A stretch of 63,583 bases of DNA, filler included, from Octopus bimaculoides (GCF_001194135.2; 4 parts of 4 records of this genome joined end to end with filler, not necessarily neighbours in it), one strand, 5' to 3'. Counted from the first letter of the whole stretch, positions 11,102-23,204 are shown. Program-made: numbers and translations. The notes: generated from the sequence alone by a model not told the origin.

Positions 11102-11134
11102 TATAAATACGCATCGTTTTCGCATTCGTCATTC
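11102..11134 (+). promoter_or_regulatory. Core promoter of the Cys-rich gene: TATA box and Inr
   Basis: TATAAA 11102-11107; TCATTC Inr 11129-11134 with the A 29 nt after the TATA start; both conserved in the paralogous copy at 25034-25066. Confidence 0.7.
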
Positions 11135-11171
11135 TTTCAATTTTCTTCACCGCTTTCTCCTTTCCTTATAC
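11131..11171 (+). other. Non-coding first exon of the Cys-rich gene
   Basis: Inr to donor C|GTAAGT (11172); the same 41-nt exon and donor are conserved at 25063-25103. Confidence 0.65.
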
Positions 11172-12061
11172 GTAAGTGAACCTTTAACAATATCTTGTGA
11201 AATATTTTTATAACTGTTTTGAGTTGTAGCTCAGATCTGGTTTTAAAAACTTAATGTATTTTCCGTCTTTTCTTAAAAATTGTTGTTTAATATATAAAAT
11301 GAGAAACGCGCTTGGGTTAAATTTTTTTAGCAGTAACTTGATTTGATTTTATTGAAAAAGTAAAGACAATATAAGGTCTATGTCTAAACTAATTGTATCT
11401 TTTTATTTCCTTTCTGTATGCGTGCATTTGTATCTATCTATCTGTCTGTTTATAAATTTAAACATACGCATATACATAACTTTAGATAAAGACAAAGAGC
11501 AAAGAACATTAATCAGAAAATGAATCAATACATGTTATACTGAAACATATGTTACATGAGAAGACATTGATTGCCGCTTCGATGTTTTAAGTAAGCAATC
11601 CTCTTTTAAAATGTACAATAAGCCTGGATATGCGGGGCAATCTCCGTGAATGAAACTTTGACGTGAAAAATATCTCTAAATCTATATTAAAACGGATGTT
11701 CTTAAAAACGTATATTATACAAATATATATTCATTATCTACGGATTCTTCCACGCATATTTAAATGCTTGTACGTATTATATCTTATAGATAAATATGTG
11801 TGTGTTTGTGTGAATGTTTTTGTGTAGGCAATTGTGCGCCTGCGTGTCTGCATGGTTTGGCAAATTTTTCCCAATCCTGAAGGGGAATTTGCATGTAACC
11901 ATAAGTCCTGTGATTTCTTGAATCACAGCCCAGAGCTTTACGTTGCTGATTATTCTCACAATTAAAGAAGGGATGTAGTGTCATATTAAATAAAGAAAAA
12001 TATTTGTAAATATATCGAAATATAATTATTTAAACTTGACTGTTTAGCAGAATGTAAAGCA

Positions 12062-12098
<37 letters not shown>

Positions 12099-12577
12099 TA
12101 CATACATGGGAGCATGCACTCATATATACACGTGTATTGGTATATAGATACATATATGCATATGTAATACATATATGTGTGTGTGAGAGTGTGTGTATGC
12201 AGATAGAGTTATCTAAACACACACACATGAACGAACACATTTACACATGGACGTATGCACGTACACACACACACACACACACACACGCACCACACACACG
12301 CACATATACATGGCAACATGCACTCATATATACACGTGTATTGGTATATAGATACATATATTCAATATGTAATACATATATGTGTGTATATGCAGATAGG
12401 TATCTAAACACACACACATGAATGTACATACGTACACATGGACGTACACACGTACACACAGACACAGACACACACACACACACACACACACACTTATCTA
12501 TTTATGTTACTCCCCTTTTTCTCTAAATTAGTTACTAGTTCGATCTTTTCGAATTATATTTTTACTTTCAGATCAAT

Positions 12578-12650
12578 ATGACGCGATCCATCACTTTTTG
12601 CCTATTGGTTTTGACAGCAGTAATAGCTTTCATCCGAGAAGTTGATGCGG
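12578..12650 (+). CDS. Cys-rich secreted protein, coding exon 1 (signal peptide MTRSITFCLLVLTAVIAFIREVDA)
   Basis: Acceptor TTTTTACTTTCAG (12571), ATG 12578, hydrophobic core ending VDA, donor G|GTAAGT, phase 1. Confidence 0.85.
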
Positions 12651-12984
12651 GTAAGTTTCCAATCATAGATGAAAATACTGAATTATTAAACTTTTGAAAA
12701 TTGCCTGAGCACCAATTCTTTAATCTATTTACTCAATCACACTTTTTGCGTTATAGTTTTTCACTTAGCGATATTTGATATCCGCTACCATAACTTAGTA
12801 TACATACTTATCTGTTTTTACGTATATATGCACACGCGCGTGTGTGAGTGTATGTGTGTGTGTGTGTATATATATATATGTATTTGTACATTTCGTTTCT
12901 GCATCTGGTTGGCAAAATTCTTTGTGCAAATTCGTTCTTTTATTTTTATTTTTTGTTTTTTGTTTTGTATCTAGGTCGAGTCAT

Positions 12985-20024: not shown

Positions 20025-20943
20025 NNNNNNNNNNNNNNNNNNNNNNNNNNNNNNNNNNNNNNNNNNNNNNNNNNNNNNNNNNNNNNNNNNNNNNNNNNNN
20101 NNNNNNNNNNNNNNNNNNNNNNNNNNNNNNNNNNNNNNNNNNNNNNNNNNNNNNNNNNNNNNNNNNNNNNNNNNNNNNNNNNNNNNNNNNNNNNNNNNNN
20201 NNNNNNNNNNNNNNNNNNNNNNNNNNNNNNNNNNNNNNNNNNNNNNNNNNNNNNNNNNNNNNNNNNNNNNNNNNNNNNNNNNNNNNNNNNNNNNNNNNNN
20301 NNNNNNNNNNNNNNNNNNNNNNNNNNNNNNNNNNNNNNNNNNNNNNNNNNNNNNNNNNNNNNNNNNNNNNNNNNNNNNNNNNNNNNNNNNNNNNNNNNNN
20401 NNNNNNNNNNNNNNNNNNNNNNNNNNNNNNNNNNNNNNNNNNNNNNNNNNNNNNNNNNNNNNNNNNNNNNNNNNNNNNNNNNNNNNNNNNNNNNNNNNNN
20501 NNNNNNNNNNNNNNNNNNNNNNNNNNNNNNNNNNNNNNNNNNNNNNNNNNNNNNNNNNNNNNNNNNNNNNNNNNNNNNNNNNNNNNNNNNNNNNNNNNNN
20601 NNNNNNNNNNNNNNNNNNNNNNNNNNNNNNNNNNNNNNNNNNNNNNNNNNNNNNNNNNNNNNNNNNNNNNNNNNNNNNNNNNNNNNNNNNNNNNNNNNNN
20701 NNNNNNNNNNNNNNNNNNNNNNNNNNNNNNNNNNNNNNNNNNNNNNNNNNNNNNNNNNNNNNNNNNNNNNNNNNNNNNNNNNNNNNNNNNNNNNNNNNNN
20801 NNNNNNNNNNNNNNNNNNNNNNNNNNNNNNNNNNNNNNNNNNNNNNNNNNNNNNNNNNNNNNNNNNNNNNNNNNNNNNNNNNNNNNNNNNNNNNNNNNNN
20901 NNNNNNNNNNNNNNNNNNNNNNNNNNNNNNNNNNNNNNNNNNN

Positions 20944-21014
<71 letters not shown>

Positions 21015-21264
21015 GTGTGTGTAAGTGTATTGTTGTATGTATGTATGTATGTATGTATGCATGTATGTATAGATTTGTATGTTTTATGTATGTATTTTCA
21101 TGTATGTAGTTGCTTATATAGACATGCTCGTATATATTTAAATGATAAACTTCTGGAAAGTTTTACAAATGTTTACAGCTCCAGTGATGGAAGATTGGTA
21201 ATTAAGTATTGCGTTACATATCCCAGGGCCCCCAAAATTACAAGTATAAACATGAACTTGTAAT

Positions 21265-22570
21265 CTGGATAGAGCAACCGGAGATGTCTCAATAGTTTAG
21301 CATAGGTATTTCACTGATCTTCAGCTTTATGCTAACATCCGCTGAGCACCTAGTTCCCACAACTGTGAGAAGTGACTCTCCTCTATCCCAAATCATTATA
21401 TTAAGTCTTTTGTGCTTACATTTTATTGAGTTTTTCACTGGTACATTCCACCAGTATTCCTTTTTATTATGAATGCCTAAGGCGTCTACCATATTGCGGG
21501 CTCTGGTTTGTTTGTCCTCTAGATTATCCTCCCGACAGATTTCCTTATGGAATGTCCTAGCTACATCACCATGTCTCATTGGTAGATAACACCGTGATGA
21601 CATTTTTGGGCAATTGCTTATGTATGAACTCCACAAATCTGCATCGGTTGTCACATTTTGCTGTTTTTCATGCATCTCTATCCCTTTTTAGCTTCACGTG
21701 CTTCGTTGATATTTTCTGTTCCTGGATTGCAAATGTATACCCTTCAATGTGGAAGATAGTAATCTGGCTATTGGTCCATGATAAACTGTTTTGATGATCG
21801 ATGTTACTACCATCACGGAGCCGTCTACTAACATATCCATGCAGTCTTCTCATATAGGCTCATCCTTTCATTTCTTGATACGTTGCGGTAGAGTCATGCG
21901 ACGTCCTTGTGCTTGTATTCTACATTACCAGACAAAGAGCGCTGCTCAAGGAGCTGCCTTCCAAGTCTTATGGTGTTATCAGCCTGATGTTTGCAAACTT
22001 TGTCAATGGATGTACTTCGACAATTGGTGACTAAAAATCTTGCCGAAGGGAATCAGTGAAATATCCTTGTGAATCAGTGAGATATCCTTGTGAATCAGTG
22101 AGATATCCTTGTGAATCAGAGAGATATCAGTGAGATATCCTTGTGAATCAGTGAGATATCCTTGTGAATCAGTGAGATATCCTTGTGAATCAGAGAGATA
22201 TCAGTGAGATATCCTTGTGAATCAGTGAGATATCCTTGTGAATCAGTGAGATATCCTTGTGAATCAGTGAGATATCCTTGTGAATCAGTGCGATATCCTT
22301 GTGAATCAGAGAGATATCAGTGAGATATCCTTGTGAATCAGTGAGATATCCTTGTGAATCAGTGAGATATCCATCCTTAACATGAATGACAATGGGTTTA
22401 CAGAAAGTATAAAAAAACATCACAGAGAAGCTGTCCCTTTGGAATACGCCTTTGCGATACCGTATTCTATTGGTGATAATACAGTCACTCTTTTTGTTTA
22501 AGTTCAAGATGGTGGCCCACGATGAAGTCAGGTCAGCTATGGCTTTGTTTATTCTCACTGGAACTTTAGC
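21265..22570 (-). mobile_element. R4/Dong-like LINE (RT to REL), degenerate
   Basis: RKGVFQRDSFSVMFF, FAIQEQKI, CPKMSSRCYLPMRHGDVAR, IMIWDR; frameshifts. Confidence 0.8.
22050..22372. repeat. 21-bp minisatellite (GAATCAGTGAGATATCCTTGT) with 32-bp variant units, inside the LINE
   Basis: 14 units counted, order S S S L S S L S S S S L S S. Confidence 0.95.
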
Positions 22571-23039
22571 AAGGTGAAGGTTTTCTAGCATCCATGAATG
22601 GGAAACAGAATCAAAGCATTATGTATGTATGTATGTATGTATGTATGTATGTATGTATGTATGTATGTATGTACGTACGTATGTATGTATGTATGTATGT
22701 ATGTATGTATGCTTATGCCTATTTTGTTTATGGCTTGTATAAATGTTTGTATATTGAATTACATACGTATACAGTAGTCAAAGTGATTATGTTAATGTAT
22801 TTGTCTATATTTTAATATATATACTTCGTGTTGTCAGCGAAATTACACTGCATTTCAACAGCTGGCAATTCAATTCATCGACGTTATCATAACTATATCG
22901 TTTAATGACTATAAATTTGTAAAGACTTAAATTCTGTTGCAGTAAAATAGATAATTAACAGCGCTAGCCAAATTTTATTTGGTAATATTTGTTTTCGCTA
23001 TATATAAATAATTATTTTATATAATTTTTATTTTTATAG

Positions 23040-23204
23040 AATGTGAGACTGACCAATCTAGAACCGAAAACGAAATCGCAACCAATACCAAAATCAATTT
23101 GCAATAAACCGATGAAGAAGGAGATAATAATTATACCGAGCCAAACTTTAATATTTCTCTCTTATAATCCTCACAGAAACACGTGTAATAAATAATGCAA
23201 TAAA
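23040..23204 (+). other. Probable terminal exon (3' UTR, or coding ECETDQSRTENEIATNTKINLQ* in the alternative model)
   Basis: Acceptor TTTTTATTTTTATAG (23039); AATAAA at 23103, 23187 and 23199; starts AA-TGT like exons 2 and 3. Confidence 0.6.

Follow-up and report, generated by a model that had tools for sequence, protein, structure and literature searches.

The window analysed here is a stretch of 63,583 nucleotides, filler included, from Octopus bimaculoides; the term refers to this stretch at its full length and not to the gene alone, and all coordinates are counted along it. It contains a five-exon gene (the window gene) for a small secreted protein with ten cysteines. It is a real gene belonging to a family detected so far only in Octopus, and we consider it likely that its product, which is predicted to adopt a two-finger fold similar to the FnI (FN1) modules of fibronectin, plays an extracellular binding role. 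The gene itself is already known as an unannotated database entry. What is new is the family, the gene structure, the gene cluster, the FN1-like two-finger fold and the non-canonical cysteine framework. The fold assignment offers an initial structural entry point into a secreted family that is confined to Octopus, expanded in tandem and evolving fast, and lineage-specific genes of such a kind are a plausible source of cephalopod novelties.

Joining the segments 12578-12650, 15983-16120 and 17539-17681 yields a protein of 117 amino acids (aa), identical letter for letter to the one proposed in a preliminary description of this DNA, which had assigned a signal-peptide exon and one cysteine-rich module to each of the two following exons, a layout that proves correct. 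Both coding junctions are in phase 1 (after 73 nt and a further 138 nt, the module-2 exon beginning in phase 1) and both exhibit the donor GTAAGT, at 12651 and 16121. The three acceptors (...ctttcag, ...ttattcag and ...caacaacag) are each preceded by a pyrimidine tract. The components of the gene are as follows.

11102-11109, plus strand: TATA box TATAAATA, read directly, with an initiator-like motif (Inr) TCATTC downstream at 11129-11134.
11131-11171, plus strand: exon 1, consisting of 5' untranslated region (UTR) only and containing no ATG; start approximate, placed from the Inr; donor ATAC/GTAAGTGAA.
12572-12650, plus strand: exon 2, ending in phase 1; the ATG at 12578 follows 6 nt of 5'UTR and opens the signal peptide MTRSITFCLLVLTAVIAFIREVDA.
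15983-16120, plus strand: exon 3, 138 nt, phase 1-1, encoding finger-like module 1 (ECIGC...TKKV, 5 Cys).
17539-17686, plus strand: exon 4, encoding finger-like module 2 (SCLKEDGKC...GGKC, 5 Cys), with the stop codon TAA at 17679-17681.
17687-23039, plus strand: intron 4, in the 3'UTR, holding both assembly gaps (17767-18002 and 20025-20943).
23040-23215, plus strand: exon 5, terminal, 3'UTR only in the window gene; acceptor tttttatag; end approximate.

The donor of exon 1 (ATAC/GTAAGT) falls at 11171/11172. The signal peptide, read directly from the sequence, exhibits the usual layout of n-, h- and c-regions, with V at position -3 and A at -1. Exon 4 is followed at 17687 by a GTAAGT donor, and since the stop codon lies only 5 nt before this conserved donor, exon 5 is 3'UTR; it carries AATAAA signals at 23187 and 23199. 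The first assembly gap is bordered on both sides by (TA)n and the second has (TG)n on its right. Because the stop codon precedes the first gap and both gaps are within intron 4, the reading frame is untouched by them. Our recount of the mature part agrees with the preliminary description: 93 aa (10.3 kDa) with 10 Cys, 18 K/R versus 9 D/E and one NQT sequon. The net charge is +9 and the pI about 9.2-10. As had also been remarked, the six-frame list of open reading frames (ORFs) captures only the module-1 exon, as ORF 15949-16170. Further family exons were not detectable in the window, including the readable part of intron 4, and searches of the window with ARAGORN and Rfam gave no match.

The gene had been presented as hidden. 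Its product is in fact 100% identical over 117 aa to UniProt A0A0L8IDP9, an "Uncharacterized protein" of Octopus bimaculoides; a public gene model with exactly these junctions thus exists. The protein was matched in UniRef and MetaClust. Independent support comes from this public gene model and from paralogous loci in two species, where all five exons are retained with 60-79% identity. We found no papers naming the window gene or its relatives by accession, LOC number or peptide/sequence motif. As judged by these sequence comparisons, the window gene is a real five-exon gene of Octopus bimaculoides.

Rather than a singleton, as first described, the gene is a member of an Octopus-restricted multigene family. 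An exhaustive phmmer search over 1.84 billion representatives identified nine true relatives, 31-48% identical to the window protein (E-value from 1e-25 to 9e-7), all of which are "uncharacterized protein" entries from O. bimaculoides or O. sinensis. Three word-indexed searches were also carried out, one with the single sequence and two with profiles; the two profile searches, made with family alignments, returned Octopus proteins only, with P0015 as the sole addition. Across the phmmer and word-indexed searches no relative outside the genus Octopus was detected. Two matches were set aside as spurious: P0007, a low-complexity repeat protein of 725 aa whose match runs from the signal peptide into module 1 (query positions 6-48), and P0012, a 1251-aa bacterial repeat protein (E-value = 2.6e-4). 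The family is composed as follows.

Annotated O. bimaculoides members: LOC128248056, LOC128248057, LOC128248060, LOC106872057, LOC106872088 and LOC128248175, in addition to the window gene.
Family accessions: A0A0L8IDP9, XP_052824406/07/10, XP_052825014/15/17, XP_036359380/417 and LOC118763691.

O. bimaculoides has at least nine loci, counting the annotated members and two further paralogues (X and Y, within the genomic locus L003), and O. sinensis has at least three members, on CM016864.1. On CM046606.1, P0009 is found at 107.01 Mb, P0004 at 107.14-107.16 Mb and P0003 at 107.26-107.27 Mb; these three lie within about 270 kb of one chromosome and form a tandem cluster. Taken together, the alignments and map positions place the window gene in a fast-evolving tandem multigene family restricted to Octopus.

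The gene structure is shared across the family. Six paralogous or orthologous loci (L001-L006), none of which overlaps the window, all run from a signal-peptide exon through module 1 to module 2, and their tblastn alignments stop at the same residues (...K-x-V / x-C...). Homologues of the signal-peptide exon were identified in L001-L004 and L006, and of the module-1 exon in all paralogue loci; intron positions are identical across the members compared. The TATA/Inr promoter and UTR exon of the preliminary description, read at 11102 and 11129, have counterparts in two paralogues: the promoter/5'UTR exon aligns over about 148 nt with L001 5847-5995 and L003 26163-26309 at 77-79% identity, and in these upstream alignments TATAAATAC, TCATTCTTT and the donor ATAC/GTAAGTGAA do not vary. 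Exon 5 is 64-76% identical to L001 34782-34979, L003 4946-5123, L005 27720-27904 and L006 38877-39067. The introns are not alignable between loci, except for a dispersed repeat of about 190 bp.

The family is defined by one plan, to which the window gene conforms: a signal peptide, a CxGC-x5-C-x6-W-x7-C-x4-C module and a C-x6-C-x6-W-x6/7-CW-x3-C-x17/18-C module. Little is conserved beyond the ten Cys, one strand-C Trp per module and the CW pair of module 2, and in the divergent paralogue X a Tyr replaces the strand-C Trp of module 2. The family varies at its C-terminus. In P0004 the donor following module 2 is spliced in phase 2 and the protein runs on as ...SVK/KRRWP; the donor of exon 4 in the window is homologous to it, and in the window gene, as in paralogue X, the stop codon (TAA in the window gene) directly follows the last Cys. 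The paralogues' C-terminal tails differ in length (0 to more than 80 aa) and in some cases carry dibasic sites; the window gene has no tail. We considered these tails as propeptides and rejected the idea, as they are too variable for a shared function.

Several gene models in the family deserve comment. Paralogue X is represented by a module 2 of divergent sequence (CRLINAVCSKIDTSYV...AGLC, the last Cys being followed directly by the stop) and a terminal exon, at L003 1983-2178 and 4946-5123. Paralogue Y is represented by a promoter and a signal-peptide exon (MTRLFPFCLLIW...), at L003 26163-26309 and 29376-29506. The two flank LOC128248175, no listed protein corresponds to them, and they are either unannotated genes or pseudogenes. 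For LOC118763783 of O. sinensis, the RefSeq protein XP_036359417 (P0008) takes as its start an internal Met that lies within module 1. In the genome, the module-1 exon of this locus is intact (CDGCSVEGECHSYGELWVEQTEIMCALKLC..., L005 9932-10066), so that the model looks N-terminally truncated. Three predicted isoforms of LOC106872057 (P0010, P0011 and P0014) join the signal peptide to module 2, skipping the module-1 exon and leaving five Cys; these could be real exon skipping or an artefact of the models.

The two modules of the window protein resemble each other. Their local alignment score is 58; full shuffling attained this value once in 5000 trials, and shuffling with the Cys held fixed did so five times in 5000. 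An hhalign comparison of the module-1 profile with the module-2 profile gives an E-value of 0.002, and the AlphaFold2 model described below exhibits the same strand pattern in both halves. The proposal, already made in the preliminary description, that modules 1 and 2 arose by internal (exon) duplication is supported by these results.

We predicted the structure of the mature protein with AlphaFold2, using the 9-sequence family alignment for the module pair, and also modelled module 2 alone. The pair is predicted to be all-beta with a pLDDT of 92.4, the five models being in agreement (91.9-92.4), and module 2 alone reaches 92.3. The predicted strands of module 1 comprise residues 5-7, 10-12, 17-22, 25-33 and 39-49. 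When the pair model was compared with the Protein Data Bank (PDB) by Foldseek, nine of the top ten matches were FnI module pairs (including 6-9FnI, 8-9FnI, 2-3FnI and 4-5FnI), with a best E-value of 4.8e-4, a probability of 1.00 and TM-scores of 0.41-0.52. With module 2 alone the top six matches were again FnI, with a TM-score of 0.71 and an rmsd of 2.5 Å over 47 columns. The predicted models exhibit what characterizes the finger fold, namely a unit of about 40-45 aa made of an A-B hairpin and a C-D-E sheet, and the strand order matches. The 93-aa mature protein would accordingly be described as a tandem pair of FnI-like fingers, each with its A-B hairpin packed on the C-D-E sheet and a Trp on strand C. 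Both Trp residues (W18 for module 1, W62 for module 2) are conserved apart from the Tyr of paralogue X, and hhalign places an invariant Cys (C11 and C55, respectively) at the position of the FN1 Tyr.

The preliminary description had loosely likened the cysteine spacing to the N-terminal half of VWC modules. This hunch pointed to the right fold neighbourhood, the best Foldseek matches being FnI; VWC structures themselves are absent from the 50 matches listed for the pair and for the single module, as are PSP94, pacifastin and defensin structures. The best Pfam values obtained were those of Defensin_beta (PF00711; E-value = 0.25-3.3, 8-12 bits against a cutoff of 21) and of VWC (PF00093; E-value = 0.035, in one of nine members), both below threshold. 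SVWC (PF15430), PSP94 (PF05825) and pacifastin (PF05375), which had been suggested as families to check, gave no match at E≤10, and no similarity to defensins emerged either. Sequence searches of the PDB with the protein and with the profile returned nothing but a chance match to FBXW8 (E-value = 0.83).

Several points weigh against the interpretation that we favour. The fold is assigned from predicted models, which draw on no more than 9-10 sequences, and the single-module Foldseek E-values are not significant (0.55), the query of 47 residues being tiny. The Pfam searches with the protein and nine members gave nothing at threshold, nor any fn1 (PF00039) match at E≤10. An hhalign comparison with seven human FN1 modules has a probability of about 1% and is not significant, while registering the G-x-[Y/C]-x5-W segment as expected. 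The canonical CxC and strand-B Tyr of FN1 are absent. Binding by strand addition is pure analogy, the dN/dS values discussed below are rough, and a look-up of the window protein itself (P0001) in the assembly and transcript index returned no record. On the fold evidence we regard the protein as FN1-like by its predicted fold, without assigning it to the FN1 family.

The cysteine framework is non-canonical. It consists of 5+5 Cys with a C-x4-C spacing and no CxC, and departs in this from the four Cys and CxC of FN1. With five Cys in each exon-defined module, oxidation of all ten inside a single molecule would require one or more disulfides joining one module to the other. Two patterns can be envisaged. 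One (C2-C5, C11-C31, C26-C48, C55-C74 and C69-C93) would be fully local and would produce two units with the 1-3/2-4 topology of FN1. The other would retain FN1-style links from strand A to strand D (C5-C31 and C48-C74) together with C69-C93, leaving C2, C11, C26 and C55 without symmetric partners.

The family evolves fast. Rough Nei-Gojobori estimates on 91 codons give a dN/dS of 0.73 for the orthologue pair O. bimaculoides P0003 / O. sinensis P0008 (dS 0.175), 1.06 for the window gene against P0003 and 0.77 against P0015, and 0.34-0.67 for other pairs. Despite these high values the ten Cys and the Trp residues are fixed, a pattern in which the Cys/Trp scaffold appears to be held while the surface changes at a near neutral rate or faster. 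As the dS between the window gene and its paralogues (about 0.5) exceeds that between the species (0.175), the lineage of the window gene is older than the split of O. bimaculoides and O. sinensis, and an orthologue of it would be expected in the latter. Across the family, the mature core has a net charge that ranges from -7 (P0005) through -2 (P0009) to +9, the window gene being the extreme. The cationic character, which had been taken as an antimicrobial clue, is thus specific to the paralogue and not a property of the family. The NQT sequon is not conserved in the family either.

By analogy with FnI pairs, the product of the window gene is most likely a small soluble extracellular binding protein. 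FnI pairs bind extended peptide segments by beta-strand addition, and the solved FnI pairs matched by our model are, according to the Foldseek match descriptions, complexes with a collagen peptide and with staphylococcal FnBP fragments. The combination of an invariant Cys/Trp scaffold, a fast-changing surface, variable charge and tandem expansion suggests that its partners would be found at a rapidly evolving interface, such as saliva/venom, immunity, reproduction or chemical signalling. A more specific scenario, which we consider unlikely, is that the octopus lineage independently co-opted a true but very divergent offshoot of the FN1/VWC-SD1 finger superfamily as a soluble protein made of two modules alone, and that diversifying selection accompanied its later tandem amplification. 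The protein would then itself be a species-specific ligand (a gamete or conspecific-recognition cue, for instance) or a salivary or immune effector binding its target by beta-strand addition. If true, this would establish an FN1-type finger in a protostome and a new class of cephalopod secreted effectors.

Other functions were weighed against an FnI-like binding role. The lineage restriction, tandem expansion, disulfide richness, secretion and high dN/dS of the family are a typical signature of venom components, and would suit a toxin or protease inhibitor of the posterior salivary gland acting on prey targets. We judge this unlikely, as the protein bears no likeness to known cephalopod venom families or to the pacifastin, Kunitz, Kazal and antistasin inhibitor folds; the family accessions are also absent from the supplements of an octopod venom-genomics paper (PMC7656900), which is weak evidence. 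That the protein is a cationic antimicrobial or host-defence peptide, the +9 molecule disrupting microbial membranes in the manner of big defensins or other disulfide-rich antimicrobial peptides, would be in keeping with its small size, secretion, disulfides and strongly basic nature, and with a rate of evolution seen in many immune effectors. This explanation is quite unlikely, given that the charge is not conserved, that no antimicrobial family is matched significantly (the Defensin_beta value being below the cutoff) and that the predicted fold is of a binding-module type and not amphipathic.

A role in reproduction or chemical communication, as a gamete attractant or pheromone, finds parallels in two cephalopod proteins: the squid pheromone beta-microseminoprotein, of about 10 kDa with 10 Cys, and the reported egg-derived sperm attractant of O. 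vulgaris, of 11 kDa. The mature window protein has a fitting size and cysteine number, and restriction to a genus and fast evolution are common in reproductive proteins; chemoattractant peptides of O. vulgaris egg capsules are cited in a review (PMC6712556). Yet the Cys spacing differs from that of beta-microseminoprotein, and neither Pfam nor the Foldseek matches bring up this family; we judge a role of this kind quite unlikely. Least probable, and very unlikely in our view, is a modulator of BMP/TGF-beta signalling, in which the fingers would be SD1 subdomains diverged from a VWC/chordin-like repeat and would bind a signalling ligand. The SD1 subdomain of VWC is FN1-like, and in crossveinless-2 it is the part that binds BMP; both the motif resemblance pointed out in the preliminary description and the weak VWC match of one family member would fit. 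The CxxCxC and CCxxC motifs that define VWC are nonetheless missing, no VWC structure is among the top 50 Foldseek matches, and genus restriction, tandem expansion and a dN/dS near 1 would be unusual for a conserved developmental regulator.

The surroundings of the gene are rich in repeats. The GC content is 36% across the window, in which microsatellites and retroelement fragments are abundant. Long (CA)n, (CATA/TATG)n and related microsatellites occur at 12060-12490, 13000-13700, 22620-22710 and 25330-25519, and the assembly gaps of the window lie within or beside repeats of this type. A 278-bp stretch is present in two 100% identical copies (23072-23349 and 23428-23705) flanking a gap of 78 N (23350-23427) and includes most of the terminal exon with both AATAAA signals; it is most likely an unmerged overlap, that is, an assembly artefact and not a biological duplication. 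In intron 2 a minus-strand ORF of 192 aa (14614-15192) encodes a reverse-transcriptase zinc-binding tail (Pfam zf-RVT, E-value = 7e-6) of a LINE fragment, and a second minus-strand ORF (6739-7008) is similar to its upstream part. A tRNA-like sequence (...GTGGTTAAGAGCGCGGGCTACTAACCCCAAGATTCCGAGTTCGATTCC...) at 17350-17410, in intron 3, was not called by ARAGORN and has no Rfam match; it is probably the head of a tRNA-derived SINE. The dispersed element of about 190 bp (7444-7637) has many copies of 86-93% identity, in both orientations, in L001, L004 and L006, paralogue loci of two Octopus species, and looks like a SINE-type repeat. Finally, a segment of 1 kb (1197-2210) matches L001 40538-41569, about 6 kb downstream of the terminal exon of P0004, at 78% identity. 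Either the unit of tandem duplication reaches beyond the genes or the segment is a shared repeat.

Three known systems may be compared with the family. Beta-microseminoproteins (PSP94/MSMB, including the squid aggression pheromone) are secreted, fast-evolving proteins with a mature length of about 93-94 aa, 10 Cys and two beta-rich domains, and are in all these respects similar to the window protein. They differ from it in Cys spacing, the window protein having no CC or CxCxC, and come up neither in Pfam nor among the listed Foldseek matches. VWC (chordin-like cysteine-rich) modules have ten Cys and the arthropod SVWC (Vago) modules eight, with an N-terminal subdomain that is FN1-like; O'Leary et al. 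are said to have described the VWC SD1 subdomain in these terms in 2004. Like the window family these proteins are secreted, those of the SVWC type being small and lineage-expanded, and the weak VWC match of one member was mentioned above. The window family in contrast lacks CxxCxC and CCxxC, exhibits a two-fold internal repeat instead of the SD1+SD2 arrangement, and has neither a Pfam match at threshold nor a VWC structure among its top Foldseek matches.

In predicted fold the closest resemblance is to the FnI pairs of fibronectin (2F1-3F1, PDB 2cku; 8-9FnI, PDB 3ejh). According to the predicted model, the two have in common modules of about 45 aa, in each of which an A-B hairpin lies above a C-D-E sheet and strand C bears a conserved Trp; in both, the modules follow one another head to tail. 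FnI modules are each encoded by one phase 1-1 exon, and module 1 of the window protein is likewise contained in a single phase 1-1 exon. The differences are the lack of detectable sequence homology, five Cys per module instead of four, no CxC in strand D, a Cys at the position of the strand-B Tyr of FN1, and a protein that consists of two modules only and comes from a mollusc. FN1 domains have been reported to be chordate-specific or largely confined to chordates (Hynes 2012, PMC3308698). The predicted finger pair of the Octopus family bears on this restriction: either the fold is both older and more widespread than sequence searches show, or it was reached by convergence.

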